64,000 bases of DNA from Chlorokybus atmophyticus (lineage: Eukaryota > Plantae > Mesostigma and Chlorokybus algae): assembly GCA_009103225.1 (NCBI GenBank), contig RHPI01003642.1:669932-733931 (forward strand), written 5' to 3'. Each line of letters starts with the position of its first letter. Position 1 is the first letter of the stretch. Shown one piece after another: positions 41,843 to 57,764 of this stretch. The notes beneath the pieces were generated by a model. It did not search any database, was not told the DNA's origin, and was given only the letters and a program-made list of their open reading frames with translations. The translations under genes were made by a program, and so were the position numbers.

Positions 41843-42727
41843 TTAGTCCCGCCATCTATGTCCGCAATTCGCATTACAACACACAAAAAATAGGGTCATT
41901 CCTTCCTCACTCCGGCTTGTAGCCTGCACGAGTCGCGTTGACAGGGTTGTCATTGTAATGGTTTTCGCCATAAAAGCATGTGAGTTTCTGTGATATCTGC
42001 CTGTGAGCCAACTTGATCAAAGATGAAAGCAGAAAAGGAGAAAGAAAGGGCATCCAAGTGATACCTGGAAAAATACTGCTTCTCGGTGCCCGCACTTGAC
42101 GCACTTGACGTCTTTTGTTCTAGGCAATGTTGGATCCGCACTCACGTCTTGAAGAATCTGTGTTCGCTCGCTAACACAAACCAAGTGTGAATGCAGTGAT
42201 CAAGAGTTGCGCTGCTAACATGGGCGTCAGTTACTCAAACACTTACTCCTCAGAATGGTGGATCTCATTCCTGTACACGCAGTTGTTGTCAGCCGCCTCC
42301 TGCAGCAAGATTTGGTTAACTGCTGCTAGCATTTTATGCATGCTGCACAACATTGTTCAATGTCTTGTCTAACGCTGGCAGTGTTGCGCTGTTAAAAGCC
42401 ACTTGCATGTGGCATATACAAGGTCACACGAAGCAGCTCGCAGTCAATGATGACTGTTGACACAAAGAAAATTTGTGACAAGATTCATGTAACGTGCCAC
42501 TTACTATGCATGCAAACATGCTACACCTCTTACCGTATGGTCACATATCCGGCAGGCATATAATAGCACCTTGCGTTCTTTTTCTTCACGTGGGTACAAC
42601 ATGTTGTTACTGCAAAACCAGTAGTTTGCGATGTGTGTACACAGGGTTTGAGTATCAAACGGGAGGAAGCAAAGGGCAGGTTGAACGCAAGCACGCACCA
42701 CTCGCGACAGAAGCGCATAGTACTCAT
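41843..42727 (-). CDS. RPB9: DNA-directed RNA polymerase II subunit RPB9, 5 exons
   Basis: [50 protein letters not shown]/...[50 protein letters not shown]-stop: both zinc ribbons present. Confidence 0.96.
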
Positions 42728-43690
42728 GTCTACTGGCCTGCTGAAGATGACCGGAACAAAACTTCCCGCATTCAACAACGGCAAGCAGTCTGCGCGGCTT
42801 TCAACCAACCACCCACACAAAACCCTACCGACGCCCCAGCAGAACGCAAACGCAACACTCAACGTCTCTTTCAGGCAGCGGGCTAAGCTTGAAGTAATAC
42901 ACCGCCGCCCCGCCGTAGCCACCACTGACTTTGGCGCCAATCTGCGTTCGGCGCCTGCCGCTCTGACTGTTGCCGCGCAGAAGACGATTAAAAGCGGTTT
43001 CTAGCGGCACTATTAGCTCAAAAGTTTAGCTACCTGTTCCGCTACTACAGGTCTGGCGGTCACGCGTACCCGACGGACGTGAGTACGGTGGCATTCACGG
43101 TGCAGTCGGTGTACTGCCGCAGTACTGCGCCTGGTGGTGGACGAGGATGCCGGATGACTGCCACGTTGCAGTTGCGGTATGTGGGCAGAGGGGCAGGCTG
43201 CATTGGCGGCTAGACCTGCCATTGTGGTGGTGAAAGGTTGTGGTGTTGTCGGAGGCGTGGCGGCTGTTGAGCGCATGGGCAATGCGGTGCGTTCTGCTTC
43301 CGGTAAAGCTTGGGGGTGTTTGTTGGTGTGAGTGTGACAGCTGGTCACGGTTGTGAGTTGCGAGTTGCACTTGGGTTGTGGGTTCTGGTGTGTGCTATGC
43401 TTGCCGTCTCCTGCCGTCTCGTTGCATGCTATGAGGGTCTTGGTGGTCAGCTATTAAGTCGACTGTTGAAGTCGGCGCTCCAGCTTGCAATGCACAATTG
43501 TGATGCGCTCCAGGTGCTTGAAGGTGATGATATCCACGCACTCACCGGCGGATGTTTCAGAATGCATGCGTGCTAGCTTATAATTTAGAAGATGCGCTAG
43601 CATGAAACCGTGGCAAGCCAGTCGTAGGCAACCGGCAGGATTGTCTTGTGCACTGCTGTGCCAAGATAACCGATAGGCTGGTTGATTGGA

Positions 43691-46600
43691 ATGGGAACTG
43701 AAGTTTGTGAAGACTACACGACCGCACCTCAAGCCAGCGGCTCCGATCATGCTGATGCCATCGCAGTCACGGTGGTTTCAGACCACGGTGGCAAAGAGCA
43801 CGAAGTCAAGGTTACAATACATGCAGCCAATTCCTCGGAGAACAAGGCTCCTGCAGACGCTCAATTGCGCCCTACCATCTCCAGAGCGGACAGTTGTCTT
43901 GCACCAGACGGGACGCACGAGAGCCTGCAACAGGTTTTACTACATGTTATCGTGACAATGCATGCGACCAGTTACTGCTGTCGCGTCTCAACATGTTGAC
44001 TTCCTGCAGGTTATGGCGAATAAGTACAAAGATGACAGCTGTTCAGAGATTGTGCTTTTCCCACAGACAAAACTGGAATTGCTCTCTCAGCGGGAAACGG
44101 ACTTGTTCTCATATTTGCTGATTGCTGGGATATTCATTGCGCTGCTCATGATGACACTGGCAGGAGTTGTGTCAAATAGCGGCAGGTAAGTATGGTAGTA
44201 TGCACATGCAGTGTACGCATCCAGTGTCGTTGCGTCGGTCGGTCATGTGTCTCTTGACATTGCACCTTGTGCTTGTTCAGCCCAGGCACAGACTTAGGCG
44301 CAGTTGACATTGTGAACCTGGTCTTCCAGCTGGGCCTCTTGTTTGGTACAGCCTCAATGATCGTGCTTTACATCAGGCGCTGTTTCGGTTTGCAGCCTCG
44401 AGAGCAACGCGTGCGTCAGCAAAGGTGTGCTGGATTTTCTGTTCATGTGTCAGTGATGCCTGATGCTAAGTGAACATTCTTGCTCCCACAGATGGGTGCT
44501 GATGCTTCTAATTGGGTTTTATCTGTCATCCGACATGCTGGGCTGGTTTGAGGCGGTGATCACTCGTAAGCGATATGGACCTGTTGCAAGATATTCAGCC
44601 CAAGTTACATCAGCAACATGCATCGCTGCATATTACTTGTACTGGATGCTGAACACCCACTGGTTCAGATTACTCACTCCAGAGCTGCCTCGCAACTTTT
44701 ACTGGCCAAAGGTGGGTTGAACCGGTTCGCCATCTGTGCTGCTGGGCATTTTGCGGTGGCATGCTAAATGCAATATAACTTAACAATGTTGTTCGTGCAG
44801 GTGACTGTGTGTGTTGGTTACTACATGGTTCGCACAACACTACAGCTGACTTTTGATTTCCAAACTTTTACGGCACCTGTCACTTATGCAGTCGCAGCTG
44901 CCCGGGTGCTGGTCTGTTTCGGACCTGAAGAGCTTAGCGCAACTGATTACCAAGCATGCTATGCGGCGATAGGGCTGGCAGGACTTGACATTGTCATTGC
45001 CTTGCAAGTCGTATTGTCGATGCACAAGACGCGAAAGTTACTTCATGACTTACCCTTTTTCAAGTACCGGTACGTTGTTGACGGTATTGTACCTCACTTG
45101 TCAGGCTTGCTCATGCCACGCATCTTACTGATGGGATGTACAACAACAGGTCCAAGATGCTCGGCTTTAGGGCTCATGTTCTGCAGATTGGCGTGCTGTG
45201 GAACTTGGTTATGGTGTTCACAGCTGTGCACGTGCTCAGTGTTCCCTCAAAGGGTTTCATAGTAAACGGGGGGCACCGCAACTTCAATGGGAATACATTC
45301 ATGTCAATTGGCATTGGGTTCGTTGCCATTGCATGGGCTTTTGTTCAGGTGAGGTGAGGGGTTTGGGTTGGGTTTTGAGATCGTGCCTTTTGGTAGAACA
45401 GGTTGTGGGGTACATTGCTCAGCATTCAAAGCTGCTGATTGTACGCACAGGCGCACATGCATCTGCCCATGGATACCCATCACCTCGGACTGCGCGGTTG
45501 GCTGTACACAGACCCAACATGGAGCTTGTACAATGACTTGGAGCGATTGCCAACTTACTCTTTACGGCGCAGCAGGAGCCATAGTACACAACTGAGACCT
45601 CACTTTTCATTGGAGGATTGCGTCGAGGCTTTCAACTTGTCAGCAGTTGCTTATCGCTCCCCTAGTGCTGCATTTGAAATTTTGGCATCGCCAGAAGCTA
45701 TGGCGGACGGCGACGCCGCTGCCTTCATTTGTATAGGACATGTTGTTGATAGTGATACAGATACCCATGTATATATATTTAGCAGTAGTAATAAGATAGC
45801 CGTCACCTTCCGCGGTACGTCGAGTTTGAACTCGCTCGCGACAGACCTGAGATTTGGGATGTCGCCAGTGGATGAAAGTATGCGGCACTTGCAGCTTGGC
45901 AACAAGAAGAAGGTGAAGGAGTGTAGACAGAATTATGGCAATTCAACACAGCACAGCTGTGTAATAAAGGCCATTGTCTCCAAGCGCCAAGTTGCAGGAA
46001 GGTAAGCTGTTGCATCCCATGTGCGCACTACGCCTGCAGGATGTTTGCAACTTGGGCGGCTGCGTACGTGCTGACGTCTGTCATTGGTCCACAGACACAA
46101 AGTTCGCCAGACAGACGCGAGCAGCAGCAGCTCATCACATGGAGGCGCTGTCGCTTCTGTCAGTTCTGCGTGCAGCGCTGATGCATCGTGTCTACATGTC
46201 AATGATAACAAAGAATGGTGGGACAGCCTCCCTGGCCCACTCCCTGGGTACCAGGAGCAAACCGGTGTCCCGCAGGCTGCATTGTCTCATGACGGCAGTC
46301 AATCGAGTGACACTGCCAATGCAGAGGTTGTGGTTGAAGACCTGGGCGCAGGAGGTGACTATACTCAGGCAGCTCGGCAAGTTGTCGATAACATCCGAGA
46401 TCGAGCCACCAGGAAGAAGATACGGCGTGTGCACTCAGGGTAGGGGTCTTACTCTTCTACTATGCTTGACGCCCCGCAGCAAACCCAACTGTTGCATACA
46501 TGATAAATCTATTGATTTACCGGCATTGTCTCAGGTTCTACATGGCGTGGCGGCGTGTGGCTCGAGAGGTGACTTGAGTTGCACATGCAGCACAACCTAC

Positions 46601-47396
46601 TCTCTGTGGGGGGACTGCTATTACGTGTGGCATGTCGACTAAACCGGCAGGGCGTGCAAATGAGCTGTTTGTAAGCTACTATGTGCCCACAGGTGCTCAG
46701 CCTTGTGTCCCAAGAGCGAGTGAAGGTCGAGGAGCCGAGACCAGTGTTGGTCACTGGCCACTCACTTGGCGGCGCGCTTGCTGTACTATGCGCATACGAT
46801 ATGCGTGTGGCTATGGGTATACCTGCCGGAGAAATAACGGTCTACACCTTTGGCTCGCCGAGGATTGGCAACAGCGGTTTCACAACAAGGTTTAACGAAC
46901 TAGTGCCTGTGGCATTTCGCGTTGTCAATAATCGTGACATGGTTACAAAGCTTCCAATGCAAGTGCTGGGGTTCACCCATGCAGGAACACTGGCTCTGTT
47001 CGACGCACAGGTGAAGCCATACATCTACTGCTACTGTTGTAGTTATGTGAAGTTGTGATCTAACATGCGAGTTGTGAGAGTGTAACTTGGATCTGACTGA
47101 CTTGTGTTCTTGGCATGTTGCAGAGTCACAATCTACTGCTCGATCCGAGTTGGGCAGAGGTGGTGTTCATGCACAACGCGCCCTTTGGCAGGACGAGCCG
47201 TCACACCATGATTGCATACAAGGCCTCCATTACTGGTTGGACCCAAAGAACTCACAGTCGAAGCAACTGGGCACCCCCCTTCTGGCCGAAAGCGCTTCGA
47301 GCATCAGGAATTGAGGAGGCTGTACAGCAGGACAACCTTCGCCAGCCTATGAGGCGACTGACTCGGCTCTCATTCTTTTCAATTAGACGGCAATGA
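43691..47396 (+). CDS. Multi-pass membrane (TMEM181/Wntless-like) plus class-3 lipase fusion protein, copy 1; start codon uncertain
   Basis: About 8 hydrophobic segments, then VTFRGTSS, RVHSG/FY, LVTGHSLGGALA (46756-46770), VYTFGSPRIGN, RVVNNRDMVTKLP, SRHTMIAY. Reading frame preserved across the GT-AG introns checked. Confidence 0.85.
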
Positions 47397-47956
47397 TTAT
47401 CACGTTAACCACCAATATGTGGTATTGGTCGCATGCCTCAGCATAGGTTATCTAAATGGGGTGTGTGATGGCAGCAGTTGTGATGGCAGCAGTTGCAATG
47501 GCCTGCACGGTTGACTATTGCGTTGAGCTCTGTCTAAGCTCTTGCTGAGGTTGCACTGCCAAAATGGTCGTTGTACATGCTAACTTACATTTCTGTTGAA
47601 ATGGTGTGCTGTCAGGTCCGCATGTGACTGGTGGTACACAAATCCTGGCTGGCGTGCATTGACACCGGGTATTTGTATTTGCTTCCTTACACACTTCCGT
47701 GGGGGCATGGTTTGAACATGACTGCGTCAAGCACTGCAACCTTTCTATGTTATTGTAGTAGCGGTCCTGTGTCATTTGTATGTGGACATGTGCTGATGGT
47801 AATAATTATGGTGTTTTTTGCAAAATTTACATAACCTGCAGCTTGAGTGAGCACTGAACACCACCACCACTTGACCTAAGCAGAGCCACTGGGCAAGTTG
47901 CAATATGCAGCCTACACTTGGCACTAAACATAACTCTACCAGGATACATCTAGTGG

Positions 47957-50121
47957 TCATGTGGCTGCAATTTTAAGCTCGCACCCGCAGAGCACATGCA
48001 ACAGCACCTGGGTTATCTCTCGCATCGGCTCGTCACACCAGTGAACCATGTCTGCTTGCCTACGATGCGCATCCTCTCGCACCTACAATGGCAGCTTTCT
48101 AGTCAGTGCCCAGCGATGGCCATAACAATGTCATGGTGACTATGGCAAGGGAAGTACCTGAGTAATTGCGCCATGCGTCAAGTACGTCAACAGGTGCATC
48201 TGCTGCTGGTAGCGTGCTCAAGGCGCTCTTGATGAGGTCATTGGTAAGCCCAACATTTGCAGGCGTAAAATGCTGATGTTTCTGCTGCATGCAGGTCGGA
48301 TAGCCCAATGTTGCCAGTCGCATCTGGCTTGTTGCGATCAGCAGGTGCACTGCTGTGGCTGTCATCCAGATCAGCCTGTCAAACATCGGGATGGTCCGAA
48401 CAGCAGCAACAAACCGCTTCACCTGCTTGCACATCACATTAGTTCTGCTGCCAAGCAACTGTCCTCGAGCTCATAGCCATGCAGATGACACTGCCACACA
48501 CACCGCGGGTATGAGGTGTTCTTTGGTGACTCGGCCGTAAGCAGCATCATGCAGGCCGATGGCAAAAAGAAAATGTTCTCGAGTGCTGGGGCTGCCTCGC
48601 AGCCGCTCGTTGAGGATGGCGCGCATGTTGGCCACAAGTTCCTTGTCAGTGTAGTGTTCAACTGCGAAAAAACAGCGATCCCCTAAAGTCTATTTGTTGC
48701 TGATAAACTGGTCAGCAGCGGTGCAACGACATTGGAATGAGGTACCCAACATTCCAAGGTGCGGTTCGATGCGCGCAGGTGAGGTCACAAGATGGGCTGT
48801 GCGACTGCGCACACTGCAAGTATGTGCACAGCTGCATGCCGACCGAATCAGCCACCATCGCAAGCGTGATGTTTTGAAAGACACTTCTGGCCGCTCGCCT
48901 GTCTGTAGCGACCGTACTGGCAGTCCCTGCCCTGCCACATCTCATAGCTGCAATACTCTGGATATTTACTTGTCAACTGTGAACCGCCCCACTTGGATGG
49001 ACAGTTATAATGGCCGTCTGCTCACTTGCAAGCCGGACAGATGGGCGTGGCATCTTGGTGCGGGCTGAAGACATCCCTTTGACTTGCAGAAGTCCAACTC
49101 GCCCAGTACCCAGCGTTGTTGGTAGAGGTACAAGCATGGGATGGCAGTGGTTGCAAGACGTATAACTGAGGAATGCCAATGGCAAAAGGGGCACCAGCCA
49201 CATACTACCCGACGTATCACTTTGCCTCTGGCTGTTCTCGTCCCGATCGGTCAACAGCACCCATGCGGGATGTATTCAACCCATACAATAACCTGTGTGA
49301 CCACTGGTTGGCACTGCGCCTCCATGTCTTGACATAGAGCCCAGCCATGTATAATCCATGCACAACTTGGCCACGCATCAAGACATTGCCACACACCGTG
49401 TGAGGTCCAGCTTCTACAGGGACAAAGTGGATGTTACTTGCCAGGCCGCAGATTGTGGCGCACCACTTGACACACTGCCTGATCCTATGAATAGGATATT
49501 CAATAAGTGTGTTGCCAAACCTCTGCACAAGGGGGCAACAGCAACGTGGTGGCATTGGCGTTGCTGCAGCGCACCTTTGACAATTATGTACAACACTGCG
49601 TCCGTAGATTGTCGTGGGTGGGTCCGGCCTTGGCACGGTGGTGTTACCGCACAACCAACCCCAAAAAGACAGTAGGGAGCTCAATGTCATAGTGAATGTC
49701 ATGTGTGCCGTTCCAGACGGCTGTGTGCGAAGGGATGTTCATCAACTGGTTTGACTGGGATCTGCACATGATACCGCTTGGTGAACAACGCAAGTAAGTT
49801 TTGGCACAACCCACAAGCAGCGAGTGTGACAGTAGTATGCGCAGCACATGCAATTCAGAGCTCTGCTATAGCTGCACAAGTGTCAAGTGCAACGCGGAAC
49901 CTGGAATGCACAGTTTTTGACTATGATGGCTAATGCTCACCTGCTGTACAAGCAGAGCTGTACAAGCAGTGGTTTTGTCGACTGATGGGACGTCTAATGC
50001 TAAGGTGCGGGGTGCACGCAACTCGGCAAAGGACCTCCATAGACAGGTGGCGGAAGCAACCGCGGCAAAAACCAGCAGAAGAACCGCCCTCCGCGTCACT
50101 GAGCCGCCCACCATATCGCAT
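47957..50121 (-). pseudogene. NXPE/PC-esterase-like gene, copy 1, probable pseudogene
   Basis: Paralogue of 55600-57764 with a 4 nt insertion near 49618, 2 nt deletions near 49435-49445 and 49271, and a CAG-to-TAG stop at 48690-48692. Confidence 0.75.
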
Positions 50122-50370
50122 GCAAGCACCTTTCACCGGGACAGGTGGACAGTTAAAGGGCTAGCAACCTGACGGCTAACAAGGCTAGCTACTAAACACG
50201 CAAATGCAGCTACACAGCAGTGGAAGGCTGGCCTAAAACTGCCACAACCTCATCGTCACCCAGAAGACCGCCAGCGCCGCCGCTCATGGAAACAACACGT
50301 TGTTGCTGCAATCGCAGTTGTGTGCATGCCCAGCTTGTAAAGACACTAGATAAAGCGGTTGGCAAATTGA

Positions 50371-50412
50371 ACGCAAACACTCACCACTCACGACGACGCG
50401 CATAGTACTCAT
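50371..50412 (-). pseudogene. Orphan decayed copy of RPB9 exon 1
   Basis: Minus strand reads ATGAGTACTATGCGCGTCGTCGTGAGTGGTGAG versus ATGAGTACTATGCGCTTCTGTCGCGAGTGGTGCG in RPB9; no downstream RPB9 exons follow. Confidence 0.8.
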
Positions 50413-51361
50413 GCCGGCTAACAACAACCAGAACAAACTCCCCTCTTTAACGGCAAGCAGTCTGCGCAGCCTTTCTTGGGCCACCATTGGTGGCCCAAGA
50501 AAGGCGGTAGGGTTTGGTGTTGGTGGGCCACCAACACCAAATCCTACCGCCACCCCAGCAGAGCGCAAATGCAACACACTCAACGTCTGTTTCAGGCAAC
50601 GGGCCTCATCGCCACGACCGACTTCAGGACGACTGACTTTGGCGCCAATCTCTGCTTCGCCTGCCTCAAGCCTGTTGCCGCACAGGAGCCGATCTGAAGC
50701 GGCTTGCTAGCGACACCATCAGCCCAGACGTTTTAGCAACCTGTTCCGCTACTAGTACAGAGGTCTGGCGCTGGTCACGCTACCCGACGGACGTGTGTGT
50801 GTACGGTGGCACGGTGCAGTCGGTGTACTGCGCCTGGTAGTGAACGGGGATGCCGGATGACTGCCGCGTTGCAGTGGCGGTGGGTGGGCGGAGGGCGGGG
50901 TGCATTGGACGTTGTGGAGGGGGGAGGTGGTTTCGTCGAAGGCGTGGCGGCTGCTGGGCGCAGGGACAATGCGGTGCGATTCGGTTCCGGTAAAGCTTGG
51001 GGTGTTTGTTGTTGGTGTGAGAGTAAGAGCTGGTCACGGTTGTGAGATGCGACTTGCGCTAGGGTATGGGTTTTGGTTTGTGCTTTACTGGTGATTAGTC
51101 TCGTTGCATGCTGTGCTTGGTGGTCAGCTACTAACTCGACTGTTGAAGTCTGCGCTCAACCTTGAAATGTACAACTGTCCAGGTGCTTGAAGGTGTTGAT
51201 GTCCACGCACTCACTGGCGGATGTCTTGGAATGCATGCGTGCTAGCTTGAAGTGTAGAAGATGCGCTATGAAACCGCGGCAAGCTAGTCGTAGGCAACCG
51301 GCAGGACTGTACCGTGCACTGTACTGCTGGGCCAAGACAACCGCTACGCTGGTTGGCTGGA

Positions 51362-54300
51362 ATGGGAACTGAAGCTTGTGAAGGCTACACGACCGCACCT
51401 CAATCCAGCAGCTCCAATCTTGCTGATGCTATTGCAGTCGCGGTCGTTTCAGACTGTGGCAATGCAGAGCAAGAAGTCAAGATTACAATACAAGCAGCCA
51501 ATTTCTCAGAGCACAATGCTCCTGCAGACGCTCAATTGCGCCCTACCATCTCCAGAGCGGACAGTTGTCTTGCACCAGATGGGACGCACGAGAGCCTGCA
51601 ACAGGTTTTACAACATGTTCATCTCGACAACACTGCATGCGCACACCTACCTGTCGCGTCTCAACTTGTCGATTTCTTGCAGGTTATGGCAAACAAGTAC
51701 AAAGACGACAGCTGTTCAGAGGTTGAACTTCTCCCACAAACAAAACTGGAATTGCTCTCTCAGCGGGAAACAGACCTGTTTGTATATTTGCTTATTGCTG
51801 CGACGTTCATCGCGCTACTTACAATGACACTGGCAGAAGTGGTGTCAGATGGCGGCAGGTAACTGTTGCAATATGCACGTGTTGTGCATGGAAACCAGTG
51901 TCGTTGCGGCGGTCAGCCATGCATCTCTTGACATTGGACTCTATGCGTGTCCAGCTCAGGCACAAGATTAGGCGCAGTTGACATTGTGAATATGGTCTTC
52001 CACCTGGGCCTTTTGTTTGGTACAGCCTCGATGATTATGCTTTACATAAGGCGCTGTTTCAGTTTGCAGCCACGAGAGCAACGCGTGCATCAGCAAAGGT
52101 GTGCAGGACTTTACGTTTATGTGTCACTTGATGCTTGATGCTGAGTGAACATTCTTGCTCCCACAGATGGGTGCTGATGCTCCTCATCGGGTTTTATTTA
52201 TCAGCCGGCATGCTGGCCTGGTTTGAAGAGGTGGTGACTCATGAGCGATATGGACCTCTTGCGAGATACTCAGCCAAAGTTACGTCTGCATTCAGCATCG
52301 CTGCGTACTATTTGTACTGGATGCTGAACACTCACTGGTTCAGATTACTTACTTCCGAGCTGCCTCGCAACTTTTACTGGCCAAAGGTGGGATGAACCGG
52401 CTAGCATTTGGCGTTGGTGTGCATTGCATGGTGGCTTTCTGTGCCTATGCAGATGCAACAACATCGTGGCAACGCTGTGTTTGTGCAGGTGACCGTGTGT
52501 GTGGGTTACTATGTGGTTCGCACGACACTGCAGCTGGTGTTTGACTTCCCAACTTTTACTGCACCTGTCACTTACGCAGTCGCAGCCGGCAGGGTGCTAA
52601 TCTGTTTCAACCATGCAGAGCTTAGTGCAGCTGATTACCAAGCATGCTATGTGGCGATAGGACTTGCAGGGCTTGACATAATCATTGCCTTACAAATTGT
52701 ATGGTCCATGCACGAGACGCGAAAAGTACTTCGTGATTTACCGTTTTTCAAATACCGGTATGTTGATGACATCTACGCAGCTTATCAGGCATCGCTCATG
52801 TTATGCATCTTACTGATGCACAACAACAGGTCCAAGATGCTTGGCTTTAGGGCTCATGTCCTGCAGATTTACGTGCTGTGGACCTTAGTTTTCGTGTTTA
52901 CGACTGTAAGCGTAGTCATTGTTCGCTCGGAGGTCTTCATTGTGGACGGGCATGGGCACCGCAACTTCAATGGGAATACATACTTGTCAATGGGCATTGG
53001 GTTTGTCGCCGTTGCATGGGCTTTTGTTCAGGTGAGCTGTTGGATTCAACAAAATACTCCTGGGTCATGCACCAAAATTGTGCACTTGGTAGAACAGAAT
53101 ATGATGTGCATTGCTCAGCATATTGCTGCTGGTCGTACACAGGCGCACATCCATCTGCCTTTAGATACACATCACCTCGGACTGCGCGGTTGGCTTTACA
53201 CGGACACAACCTGGAGTTTGGATAATGACCTGAAGCGATTGCCAACTTACTCTTTACGGCGGAGCAGGAGCCGCAGTACACAACTGAGACCTCACTTTTC
53301 ATTGGAGGATTGTGTTGAGGCTTTCAACTTGTCGGCAGTTGCTTATCGCTCCCCTAGTGCTGCTGTTGAAGTCTTGGCATCGCCAGAAGCTATGGCGGAT
53401 GGCGGTAGTGCCTTTACTTGTGTAGGGCATATTGTTGATATTGACACAGACACCCATGTATATATACTTAGCAGCATTGATAAGATAGCTGTCACTTTCC
53501 GCGGCACATCAAGCCTGAACTCGCTAGCAACAGACCTGCGACTGGGGATGTCGCCAGTGGATGAGAGCATGCGGCATTTGCAGCCTGGCAACAAAAAGAA
53601 GGTGAAGGAGTGCAGACAGGATTCTGGTGACTCGAGACAGCACAGCTGTGTGATGAAGGCTATCGTCTCCAAAGGCCAAGTTGCAGGAAGGTACGCTGTT
53701 GCATCCCATTTGCGCACTATGTCCGCGACATGTTTGCAAGCGGAGTGGGCATAGATGCTGACGTCTGTATTTGCTCCACAGGCACAAAGCTGACCAGGCA
53801 GACACGAGCGCCAGCAGGTTACCACATGGAGGAGGCGCTGTCGCTGTTAGTGCGGACTCAGTCAGCTCTGCGTGCAGCTTTGATGCATCATGTCTAATTG
53901 TAACCAATGCAAGTGAATGGGCGGACAGCCTCCCTGGCCCACTCCCTGGATACTCTTTGGAGCAAAATGGTGTCCCGCCGGCTGCATGGTCCCGTGACGG
54001 CAGTCAGTTGAGTGACACTGCAAATGCAGAGGTTGTGCTTGAAGATCTGCGAGCAGGAGGTGACTATACTCAGGCAGCTCGGCAAGTCGTGGATAACATC
54101 CGAGAGCGAGCCACCAGGAAGAAGACACGGCGTGTACACTCAGGGTAGGGGTCTCACTCTCCTACTATGCTTGACGCCCCGCAGCAAATCCAACTAATGC
54201 ATGCACCGGCATTGTTTCACTCAGGTTCTACATGGCGTGGCGGCGCGTGGCTCGAGAGGTGACTTGAGTTGCACGTGCAGCACAACCTACTCGCTGTGGG

Positions 54301-55090
54301 GGGACTGCTATTACGCGTGGCATGTTGAACCGGCAGGGTGTGCAAATGAGCTGTTTGTAAGCTACTATGTGCCTACAGGTGCTCAGCCTTGTGTCCCAAG
54401 AGCGAGTGAAGGTCAAGGAGCCGAGACCAGTGTTGGTCACTGGCCACTCACTTGGCGGCGCGCTTGCTGTACTATGCGCATACGATATGCGTGTGGCTAT
54501 GGGTATACCTGCCGGACAAATAACGGTCTACACCTTTGGCTCGCCGAGGATTGGCAACAGCGGTTTTACAACAAGGTTTAACGAACTAGTGCCTGTGGCA
54601 TTTCGAGTTGTGAACAATCGTGACATGGTTACAAAGCTTCCAATGCAAGTGCTGGGGTTCACCCACGTAGGAACACTGGCTCTCTTCGACGCACAGGTGA
54701 AGCATACGTCCATTGCTATTGCTGTGGTTACGTGAAGTGGTGGTCCAGCATGCAAGTTCTTCCGAGAGTTTAACTTGAATGTAATTTATTAATTTGTGTG
54801 TTCTGGGCACGTTGCAGAGTCACAATCTCTTGCTCGATCCGAGTTGGGCAGAGGTGCTGTTCATGCACAACAGGCCCTTTGGCAAGACGAGCCGTCACAC
54901 CGTGATTGCATACAAGGCCTCAATTACTGGTTGGACCCAAAAAACTCACAGTCGAAGCAACTGGACACCCCCCTTTTGGCCGAAAGCGCTTCGAGCATCA
55001 GGAATTGAGGAGGCAGTACAGCAGGGCAGTCTTCGCCAGCCTATGAAGCGACTGACTCGGCTGGCATTCTTTTCATTTAGACGACGATGA
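51362..55090 (+). CDS. Multi-pass membrane (TMEM181/Wntless-like) plus class-3 lipase fusion protein, copy 2; start codon uncertain
   Basis: Same exon structure as copy 1; GHSLG at 54442-54456, NNRDMV and SRHTVIAY intact; indels relative to copy 1 are in frame where checked. Confidence 0.85.
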
Positions 55091-55599
55091 TGATCACTCC
55101 AACCATCATGAGATGTTGGTATCAGTCGCACACCTCAGCATAGGTTACTCATGGGACTGTGCTGCACAGTCCCAACAGTTGCAATGGCATGCGCCTTTAT
55201 ATATATGATAAGCTCCTATGTCTGAGGTTGGAGTGTCAAGATGGTTGGCGTATACATCCATTCTTTGGAAAGCCTATTTACTGACTTTTATCCTCATTGG
55301 TGTTGCACACTGTCAGGTTCGCATGTGACTGGTGGTAAACAAATCCTAGCTGGCTAGCGGTTTGCGACATCGGTTGCGTTTTGTGACATTTGGAACCTTT
55401 ACATATATAGGTACATAGAGTAGTGATCCTGTGTAAGTTACATAACCCGTAGCTCGTGTGAGCTCTTAACACATGTCTTCAGCATTGCCACTAGGCAAGT
55501 AGCATAATGTAGCTTACACTTGGCTACAAGATGCAAGTTGGCACTTGCAAGAATCTACTTAGGATAAAACTAGTGCCTATGTGGCTGCAAATCTATGAG

Positions 55600-57764
55600 C
55601 TAGCACCCACAGAGCATATGCAACAGCATTTGGGTTATCTCTCGCAATGGCTCGTCACACCAGTGAACCATATCTGCTTGCCTGCGGTGCGCATCCTCTC
55701 GCACCTGCAATGACAGCCTACGAGTCAGTGCTGACCGCTTGTCAGAATTTTTTTTCATGGGTAGCAAACTACCTGGGTAAGTTGCCATGCGTCGAGTACA
55801 TCAACAGGTGCATCTGCTCCTGGTAGCGAGCTTAAGGCGCTCCGGATGAATACGTTGGTAAGCTCAACATTTGCAGGCGTGAAATGCTGATGTTTCTGCT
55901 GCATGCAGGTCGGATGGCCCCAATGCTGCCAGTCGCATTTGGCTTGTTGCGCGATGAGCGGGTGCACTGCTGTGGCTGGCATCCAGATCAGCCTGTCAAA
56001 GAGCTGGACTGCCCGAACAGCGGCAACAAAACGCTGCACCTGCTTGCACATGAGGTGAGTTGTGTTGCTATGCATTTGTCCTCGAGCGTACAATGTGAAA
56101 AATGAATTGCCACACTCACCGCAGGTATAAGGTGTTCTTTGGTAACTCGTCCATAGGCAGCGTCATGCAGACCAATGGCCAAAAGCAGCACATGTTCTAC
56201 AGTGCTGGGGCTGCCATGCAGCCGCTCGGTAAGGATTGCGCGCATGTTGGCTGCGAGTTCCTTGTCAGTGTAGTGTTCAACTGCGAAGAAACCGCGATCC
56301 CCCAAAGTCTGATTGTTGCTGATAAACTGGTCAGCAGCGATGCAGACGACGTTGGAATTAGGAACCCAGCATGCCAGGGTGCGGTTTCGATGCGCGCAGG
56401 TCAGGTCACAAGCTGGGCTATGCGACAGGGCACACTGCAGATATGTGCACAGCTGCATGCCGACCGAGTCAGCTACCACCGTAACAGTGATGTTCTGAAG
56501 ACACTTCTGGCCGCTCGCCTGTGTGTAGCGACAGTACTGGCAGTCCCTGCTCCGCCACATCTCATAGCTGTGATACTCCGGATAATTGCTTGTCAGCTGT
56601 GAACTGCCCCAGTTGGATGGACACTTGTAATGGCCATCTGCCCATTTGCAGGCTGGACAGATGGGCGTGGCATCTTGGTGCGGGCTGAACACATCCCTTT
56701 GACTTGCAGAAGTCCAGCTCGCCCAGTACCCAGCCTTGTTGGTAGAGGTACAAACCTTGGATGGCGGTGGTTGCAAGTCGTCTGACTGAGGAATGTCAAC
56801 GGTAAAAGGGGAACCGGCCACATACTGCCCGACGTATCGCTCTGCCTCTGGCTGTTCTCGTCCCGATCGATCAACAGCACCCTTGCGAGATGCGTATTCA
56901 ACCCGTACAGTAACCTGTGTGACCACTGGTTGGCACTGCGCGTCCATGTCTTGACATAGAGCCCAGCCATGTATGATCCAAGCACAACTTGGCCACGCAA
57001 CGCATCAAGACATTGCCACACACCGTGTGAGGTCCAGCTTCTACAGGGACAAAGTGGATGTTGTACTTGCCAGGGGCCACAGATTGTGGCGCACCACTTG
57101 ACACACTGCCTGGTCCTGTCAATAGGATACTCAATATGTGTGTTGCCAAACCTCTGCACGAGGAGGCAACAGCAACATGTGGACATTGGCCTTGCTGCAG
57201 CGCACCTTTTGCAACTATGTACAGCACTGCGTCTGTAGATTGTCGTGGCTCCGGTCTTGGCACGGTGGTGTTACCGCCCCACCAACCCCAATCAGAGGGC
57301 AGGGAGCTTAGTGTCACGGTGATTGTCACATGTGTGCCGTTCCAAACGGCTGTGTGCGCAGGAACGGGCTCATTAACTGGTTTGCCTGGTTTCTGCACAT
57401 GATACTGCTTGGTGACAACAACTCAAGTAAGCTTTGCCACATTCCACCAAGCAGCAAGTGCAGCACACCAGTATGCACGGCACATGCAATCCAGAACTCT
57501 GCTTTAGCTGCGCAACTGTGAAGTGCAATGCATATATTTAGGATTCTGGAATGCAACGGTGTGACTATGATGGCTAATGCTTACCTGCTGGAAAAGCAGA
57601 GGTGTCACAGTGGTTTTGTCGACTGATGTGACGTCTATTTGCAAGGTGCGGGGTGCACGCAAGTCGGCGAAGGACCTCCAGAGACAGGTGGCGGAAGCAA
57701 CCGCAGCAAAAACTAGTAGAAGAACCGCTCTCCGCATCACACTGAGCCGCCCACCATGTCGCAT
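55600..57764 (-). CDS. Type II membrane protein with Ig/filamin-like domain and SGNH/PC-esterase-like (NXPE/TBL-type) domain, copy 2, apparently intact
   Basis: Signal anchor RRAVLLLVFAAVASATCLW; GPGSVSSGAPQSVAPGKYNIHFVPVEAG...YVAGSPFTV; WRSRDC..RYT...KCLQNITVTVVADSVGMQ (GDS-like, 56465-56473); LLLAIGLHD; VDVLDAW; DMVH (DxxH, 55663-55674). Confidence 0.65.

Follow-up and report, generated by a model that had tools for sequence, protein, structure and literature searches.

The stretch of DNA analysed here (the window) comprises 64,000 nucleotides (nt) of Chlorokybus atmophyticus (contig RHPI01003642.1 of assembly GCA_009103225.1, positions 669,932 to 733,931 of the forward strand), and all positions below are counted from its first letter. 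At 43691-47396, on the plus strand, it carries an 11-exon gene, which was established by three-frame translation of 43500-47600 and by reading of the DNA. The reading frame starts with the ATG at 43691, the first ATG downstream of an in-frame stop, and ends with the TGA at 47394-47396. It amounts to 2772 nt (923 codons) and is interrupted by 10 introns of 67-124 nt, all of the GT..AG type. This single expressed gene encodes a polytopic membrane domain fused to a class-3 lipase. The spliced translation of 923 amino acids (aa) agrees letter for letter with the C. atmophyticus protein Chrsp33S05157 (hereafter P0001), which is already present in the public proteome, where it is annotated only as a lipase. 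P0001 was used as the query in full-length searches, while the joined exons served for the identity check and for substitution counts.

The transcript evidence came from contigs of three public runs, X1, X2 and X3, which belong to two independent studies and were placed on 43000-48200. Of the words sampled from the stretch, 38-68% occur in these runs, which is about the share of exons. We took them to be RNA by guess, and another source of spliced contigs is hardly possible. All 10 introns were seen as GT..AG joints in spliced contigs of X1, X2 or X3. The joint 45348->45451, which removes the intron 45349-45450 and connects exon 6, the last of the membrane half, to exon 7, with which the lipase half begins, was found in X1 and in X2, that is, in different studies. 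In addition, one 655-nt contig spans exon 5, exon 6 and 165 nt of exon 7. A preliminary description of this locus, made from the letters of the DNA, had claimed one protein with both halves; since the inter-domain joint is in frame and was found in two studies, both halves belong to one transcript. All five peptides quoted in that description are present (exons 2, 3/4, 4 and 5/6), and two of them cross splice junctions as had been supposed.

Two paralogs of P0001 have the same layout, and the fusion of membrane domain and lipase is kept in 3/3 proteins. P0002 (1109 aa) lies on another scaffold and is about 36-37% identical to P0001; P0003 is a tandem copy within the window. The parts of the P0001 gene are as follows, where TM0 to TM7 denote the transmembrane (TM) helices.

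43275..43690, plus strand: 5' untranslated region (UTR); unspliced contigs of X1 and X2 begin at 43275 and 43311
43691..43933, plus strand: exon 1, start codon and acidic, non-hydrophobic N-terminal tail (residues 1-81), without a hydrophobic 19-mer; donor joint confirmed
44010..44185, plus strand: exon 2, end of the tail and the extra N-terminal helix TM0 (residues 113-135), hydropathy maximum 2.71; joints on both sides
44281..44424, plus strand: exon 3, 11-aa TM0-TM1 loop, TM1 (147-171) and Arg-rich loop, predicted to be cytosolic, from hydropathy, charge count and joints
44492..44711, plus strand: exon 4, TM2 and TM3, with NFYWPK as its final residues, from hydropathy and model secondary structure
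44801..45069, plus strand: exon 5, TM4, short hydrophobic loop helix, TM5 and Lys/Arg-rich TM5-TM6 loop; sub-threshold PF06814 match, E 0.002, profile 90-168
45150..45348, plus strand: exon 6, TM6 and TM7, from hydropathy and model secondary structure; joint 45348->45451 into the lipase half
45451..46001, plus strand: exon 7, His-rich juxtamembrane linker, N-terminal strands of the lipase to FRGTSS, and lid helix, from invariant columns in the three paralogs and alignment to 1TGL
46095..46439, plus strand: exon 8, most of the post-lid insert (a gap against 1TGL), ending at VHSG of the VHSGF motif
46535..46568, plus strand: exon 9, 11-codon micro-exon FYMAWRRVARE within the Lipase_3 match; joints on both sides
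46693..47010, plus strand: exon 10, lipase core with Ser751 of GHSLG (46762-46764) and Asp809 (46936-46938), from PF01764 and alignment to 1TGL
47124..47396, plus strand: exon 11, probable catalytic His860 (47202-47204; invariant in the three paralogs), C-terminal tail and TGA; joint 47010->47124

Pfam scans were performed exon by exon, with the full-length proteins and with 30 sub-pieces, and only Lipase_3 (PF01764) passed its cut-off. Full-length P0001 scored 102.2 bits (E 2.9e-29) against a cut-off of 22, and exon 10 alone scored 83.5 bits (E 1.8e-23); the class-3 lipase named in the preliminary description was thus confirmed well above the cut-off. Its nearest solved relative is the lipase of Rhizomucor miehei (1TGL, E 4.5e-18), to which the FRGxSS strand, the lid helix, VHxGF, GHSLG and the Asp motif were aligned. 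GHSLG and NNRDMV of the query pair with GHSLG and NERDIV of 1TGL, and the lipase strands of exon 7 align to residues 61-94 of the Rhizomucor enzyme. Ser751, Asp809 and His860 are invariant in the three paralogs, pairs of which are down to about 37% identical. His860 is located outside the stretch aligned to 1TGL and was assigned by motif position, and it is the probable catalytic His. The lipase, which had been called an intact GHSLG/Asp/His enzyme, therefore looks intact, with the Ser and the Asp aligned to 1TGL and the His placed by its motif. An insert of about 160 aa after the lid, partly of low complexity (query 133 to 293), stands where 1TGL has 12 residues.

In the membrane half, hydropathy and model secondary structure gave TM0 (113-135), the 11-aa loop and then seven spanning helices to residue 417, with a short hydrophobic helix within the TM4-TM5 loop. 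The loop between TM0 and TM1 is 11 aa long in 3/3 paralogs and contains no luminal GOLD domain, so that the claimed absence of a luminal domain at this place holds (the loop had been estimated at about 12 aa). The N-terminal 98 residues are acidic and without a Pfam match, and they lie ahead of TM0 on the side predicted to be cytosolic. Since the tail is acidic, plastid targeting seems unlikely. When an eight-helix model with the N-terminus inside is assumed, the cytosolic and luminal loops contain 17/7, 16/7 and 18/10 Lys plus Arg residues in the three paralogs. Because this distribution puts both termini inside by the positive-inside rule, the lipase is also predicted to be cytosolic.

Directly after TM7 (45454-45498, about residues 419-434), the motif HxHLPxDxHHxGLxGW is invariant in the three paralogs; it includes four invariant His residues and one invariant Asp, and no family match was found for it. 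These residues, at the membrane surface, could form a metal site or a pH sensor.

Substitutions were counted between the tandem copies P0001 and P0003. The ratio of nonsynonymous to synonymous substitution rates (dN/dS) was 0.26 for the membrane domain, at a synonymous divergence (dS) of 0.39, and 0.13-0.32 for the lipase parts. The linker (residues 418-480) was the most constrained segment, with a dN/dS of 0.12, and exon 8, which holds the post-lid insert, gave 0.35. The membrane and lipase halves are both under purifying selection.

The family of the membrane domain was then considered. TMEM87A, GPR107/108, GPR180, TMEM145, TMEM181 and Wntless make up one structural family, GOST (PMC9711517), and the preliminary description had proposed that the membrane region is of the TMEM181/Wntless type. 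The corresponding Pfam family, PF06664 (WLS-like_TM), gave no match in the full-length proteins or in most pieces. It appeared only on TM1-TM3 pieces of P0003, with 7.9 and 12.2 bits against a cut-off of 28.3. The best of these matches (P0003:140-262, profile 7-114 of 247) is collinear, with an E of 0.11, which is at noise level, and unrelated families match with equal weight beside these pieces. Membership of PF06664 was therefore not upheld, and at the level of the Pfam profile the outcome that the preliminary description had named as a refutation, no hit to the WLS/TMEM181 family, has occurred.

A somewhat stronger signal was obtained for PF06814 (GOST_TM). All three paralogs showed sub-threshold matches to this family, of 13.9-21.6 bits (E 1.8e-4 to 0.04) against a cut-off of 25.2: 17.8-18.1 bits in P0001 exon 5, 17.9 and 21.6 bits in P0003 pieces and 13.9-14.9 bits in P0002. 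These matches share one register, starting at profile positions 86-91 and ending at 168-200, and cover TM4 to TM5 or TM6. The same register in a paralog of about 36% identity is some evidence of kinship. In a comparison by protein language model, the nearest neighbours of exon 5 were GPR180/TMEM145/GOST clusters (0.89), and those of residues 95-420 were Wntless-like/TMEM181 clusters (0.87, 0.86 and 0.85; 183 shared features). Furthermore, an extra N-terminal helix is found, among GOST proteins, in Wntless and TMEM181 only (PMC11605061), and the count of 1+7 helices in the Chlorokybus protein equals this arrangement. Since the register of the hidden Markov model (HMM) matches, the language-model neighbours and the helix count are three weak but partly independent lines, we consider it fairly likely that the membrane domain is kin to the GOST/Wntless superfamily. 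Candidate branches are TMEM181/Wntless, TMEM87/GPR107 and GPR180/TMEM145, and an assignment to the TMEM181/Wntless branch specifically is doubtful. Of the likeness first proposed, a weak resemblance to the superfamily and the 1+7 helices thus remain, without PF06664 membership.

The membrane domains of P0001 and P0002 were also modelled by AlphaFold2 from a three-sequence alignment each. Foldseek searches of the Protein Data Bank (PDB) with these poor models returned nothing below E 0.06, and the lists were full of seven-transmembrane (7TM) receptors. Wntless chains were at ranks 9-10 and 4 (E 0.1-1.4, TM-score 0.21-0.34, non-significant) and had the best TM-scores in one of these non-significant lists, obtained with a model of low confidence. 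A shape search of a structural atlas with the same models gave noise only. No weight was given to any of these lists.

Several facts weigh against the kinship and against the orientation proposed above. No Pfam 7TM family reached its gathering score in any scan of P0001, P0002 or P0003, and these scans also brought up spurious membrane families, e.g. Cytochrom_B_N_2, with E values of 0.007-0.07. When the PDB sequences were searched at E 10 with a profile of the membrane domain, no sequence was retrieved, not even Wntless or TMEM87A. The language-model scores are below 0.9 and count as leads only. The AlphaFold2 models, with a predicted local distance difference test score (pLDDT) of 38 and 44, are unreliable and too poor for an overlay. 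The GOLD domain, which is defining for GOST/Wntless proteins, is absent, and the topology stands on the positive-inside rule as its single basis.

The distribution of the membrane domain was examined by several searches. An exhaustive phmmer search of 1.84 billion representatives, with the 89-aa exon 5 as the query, found P0001 and P0002 only. Word searches with the exon-5 open reading frame, the membrane region of P0001 and the three-paralog alignment (E 10) found only the tandem paralog; they are insensitive and missed P0002. The single exon had nothing relevant among the PDB sequences, and two metagenome scans, with the membrane domain and with the linker, gave nothing. The membrane domain is thus provisionally restricted to the three Chlorokybus paralogs, the exhaustive search having covered the 89-aa exon. 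In the literature surveyed, including the survey of G-protein-coupled receptor (GPCR) bigrams, there was no lipase fused to a GPCR-like 7TM domain (PMC5784254).

On balance, and with some reserve, we favour the explanation that P0001 is a membrane-resident class-3 lipase on a diverged, GOLD-less GOST/Wntless-like scaffold, with the lipase in the cytosol and the 7TM module as its anchor and address. The eight helices would most likely be one extra N-terminal helix and a 7TM bundle, a highly diverged relative of GOST/Wntless proteins without the GOLD domain. The lipase would be held on the cytosolic side of the membrane, a few residues away from TM7, and its substrates would be acyl esters of glycerolipids within the cytosolic leaflet of an endomembrane, both activity and location being predicted. 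GOST proteins reside in the Golgi and in endosomes. Anchorage, address and orientation would come from the 7TM module, and the His-rich linker and the lid insert may be regulatory elements. A hand-over of lipid from the 7TM cavity to the lipase would not take place. The cavity of GOST/Wntless proteins, with its lateral slot, opens towards the luminal or outer leaflet (PMC9711517); since the lipase is predicted to be cytosolic, such a hand-over seems unlikely. The earlier idea of a lipid-presenting module that feeds a hydrolase is therefore a poor fit to the predicted topology.

There is another interpretation of the same facts, which we regard as rather unlikely. The eight helices might be a lineage-specific anchor without GOST/Wntless ancestry, the weak matches reflecting the composition of membrane helices, and the function might be like that of diacylglycerol lipase (DAGL). 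DAGL shows that a multi-pass anchor joined to Lipase_3 is an established design (PMC2173631). It would also agree with this interpretation that no 7TM family rose above its cut-off and that unrelated membrane families were seen at noise level in the same scans. The PDB sequences yielded nothing, only paralogs were found among the 1.84 billion representatives (exon 5 query), and the word searches at E 10 were empty apart from the tandem paralog. Mere helix composition, however, fits poorly with GOST_TM matches at one register in paralogs of about 36% identity, with the agreement on one superfamily of two independent methods (HMM and language-model features) and with the exact count of 1+7 helices. 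The membrane domain is, moreover, as constrained as the enzyme (dN/dS 0.26), which is above the usual need of a passive anchor.

It is improbable that P0001 is a receptor-enzyme "bigram", in which a ligand, a lipid or pH would be perceived by the 7TM domain and the lipase switched on or off by way of the linker. This proposal is pure inference from the architecture, namely an N-terminal 7TM domain and a C-terminal catalytic domain in one polypeptide, which fits the GPCR-bigram class (PMC5784254). The linker by TM7, being the most constrained segment (dN/dS 0.12) and having four invariant His and an Asp, would suit a switch and recalls the conserved juxtamembrane motif of GPCR-PIPKs (PMC5784254), and the large insert in the lid region could be regulatory. 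On the other hand, none of the GOST proteins has been shown to function in signalling (PMC9711517, PMC12716839), the Chlorokybus protein has no ligand-binding ectodomain, and no lipase bigram has been described.

The proposal that the protein is a true TMEM181/Wntless member minus GOLD, whose intramembrane cavity binds lipid and presents it to the fused lipase, appears quite improbable. The nearest neighbours of the whole region are indeed WLS-like_TM/TMEM181 clusters (0.87, 0.86, 0.85); the stronger HMM signal, however, is that of PF06814. The match to PF06664 over TM1-TM3 is collinear but very weak, and the family failed with 12 bits against 28, on a piece of one paralog only. An extra N-terminal helix is confined to Wntless and TMEM181 (PMC11605061), lipid densities have been observed in GOST cavities (PMC9711517), and Wntless had the top TM-scores in one non-significant Foldseek list. 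The proposal arose from five putative motif matches to TMEM181 that were drawn by eye, and a predicted cytosolic lipase does not match a cavity whose opening is at the luminal or outer leaflet (PMC9711517). The same low probability is given to any GOLD-less, lipid-binding 7TM domain of the Wntless/TMEM181 type that would be coupled to the lipase, whether as a substrate gate or as a sensor of lipid or pH acting through the linker. Finally, the idea that neighbouring membrane-protein and lipase genes were wrongly merged, which was prompted only by the unrelated family signals of the two halves and for which nothing was found, is rejected as almost certainly wrong, since spliced contigs join both halves (in frame at 45348->45451 in two studies, and across exons 5, 6 and 7), no stop or alternative start lies between them, and the same fusion occurs in three paralogs.

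The surroundings of the gene showed further features, of which the following two concern its duplication.

51362..55090, plus strand: tandem paralog P0003 (Chrsp33S05158), 929 aa, 84% identical, with the same 11-exon plan, mapped exactly onto the window
42675..48470, no strand assigned: duplicated unit bearing the P0001 gene, with its copy at 50361-56087; 82% identity by blastn over 4971 columns, plus flanking pieces

The duplication takes in the whole gene, the promoter region and part of a downstream minus-strand gene, and the copies are about 7.7 kb apart. The 82% DNA identity of the tandem copies includes the introns. Between them, the dS falls from about 0.4, the value for the membrane part and the N-terminal lipase part, to 0.09 in the C-terminal lipase part, the low-dS stretch being 46693-47396 against 54379-55090. 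Because of this fall, recent gene conversion at the 3' end of the tandem copies is suggested. The convergent gene just downstream of P0001 is expressed (47799-48156, minus strand; joint 48080->48156, CT..AC, which is GT..AG on the minus strand), and its 3' part lies inside the duplicated unit. Upstream of the start codon, the 5' UTR contains an optional GT..AG intron, 43302-43512, which is spliced in X3 (joint 43301->43513) and retained in the X1 and X2 contigs. At 43781-43852, one X3 contig omits 70 nt with the ends AC..CC, which are no splice signal, and differs at several bases nearby. This skip, which would shift the frame here, is probably no intron and would come from a different allele, strain or copy.

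GOST proteins (TMEM87, GPR107/108, GPR180, TMEM145, TMEM181 and Wntless) are ancient and are tied to human disease. To our knowledge, their molecular function is not known except for Wntless, and the main clue to it comes from lipid densities within their cavities. If the Chlorokybus bundle is true GOST kin, the lipase naturally fused to it would be a hint, of the "Rosetta stone" kind, that membrane lipids are what the bundle works with, and this lipase would give a measurable activity for a family that has no assay. We know of no Wnt in Chlorokybus, an early-branching green alga. If the coupled Wntless-type reading were true, an organism without Wnt would provide direct evidence of an ancestral lipid-handling role of the GOST/Wntless cavity. 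The significance may be limited, since the homology is sub-threshold and three paralogs in one alga could be a lineage-specific curiosity.

The favoured explanation, a lipase on a GOST/Wntless-like scaffold, can be compared with known systems. Wntless and TMEM181 (PF06664) are similar to the Chlorokybus protein in having an N-terminal helix and a 7TM bundle, and they are the nearest language-model neighbours of its whole membrane region. They have, however, a GOLD domain where the Chlorokybus protein has an 11-aa loop, the HMM score is far under the cut-off, and their C-terminal tail is replaced by a lipase of 500 aa. TMEM87A/B and GPR107/108 (PF06814) gave the strongest Pfam signal for the membrane region, reaching 21.6 bits (cut-off 25.2) over TM4-TM6, and GPR180/TMEM145 (PF10192), together with GOST, were the nearest language-model neighbours of exon 5. 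GOST proteins carry a signal peptide and, on the luminal side, a GOLD domain, and they lack a catalytic domain, whereas the Chlorokybus protein has an extra helix, no GOLD domain and a fused lipase.

Protist GPCR-bigrams consist of an N-terminal 7TM domain, a conserved juxtamembrane linker and a C-terminal enzyme that often acts on lipids (PMC5784254). The partners listed in the survey are PIPK, INPP, AC, PDE, TKL and AP, with no lipase among them (PMC5784254). Their 7TM parts come from other GPCR families, and the bigrams are an architectural class rather than a homologous family (PMC5784254).

The closest solved catalytic relatives, Rhizomucor miehei lipase (1TGL) and the fungal class-3 lipases, are secreted, soluble proteins of about 270 aa. 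The Chlorokybus lipase is tethered to the membrane and, unlike the fungal lipases, has about 160 aa between the lid and VHxGF. The insert of DAGL sits elsewhere in the lipase fold than this insert. Membership of the DAGL family was rejected on the number of spanning helices, which is four in DAGL (PMC2173631) and eight in the Chlorokybus protein, and no sequence similarity was seen beyond the Lipase_3 core. In DAGL alpha and beta, a multi-pass anchor at the N-terminus precedes a class-3 lipase that is cytosolic and contains a regulatory insert (PMC2173631), and sn-1 DAGL is the best functional analogy for the Chlorokybus protein.

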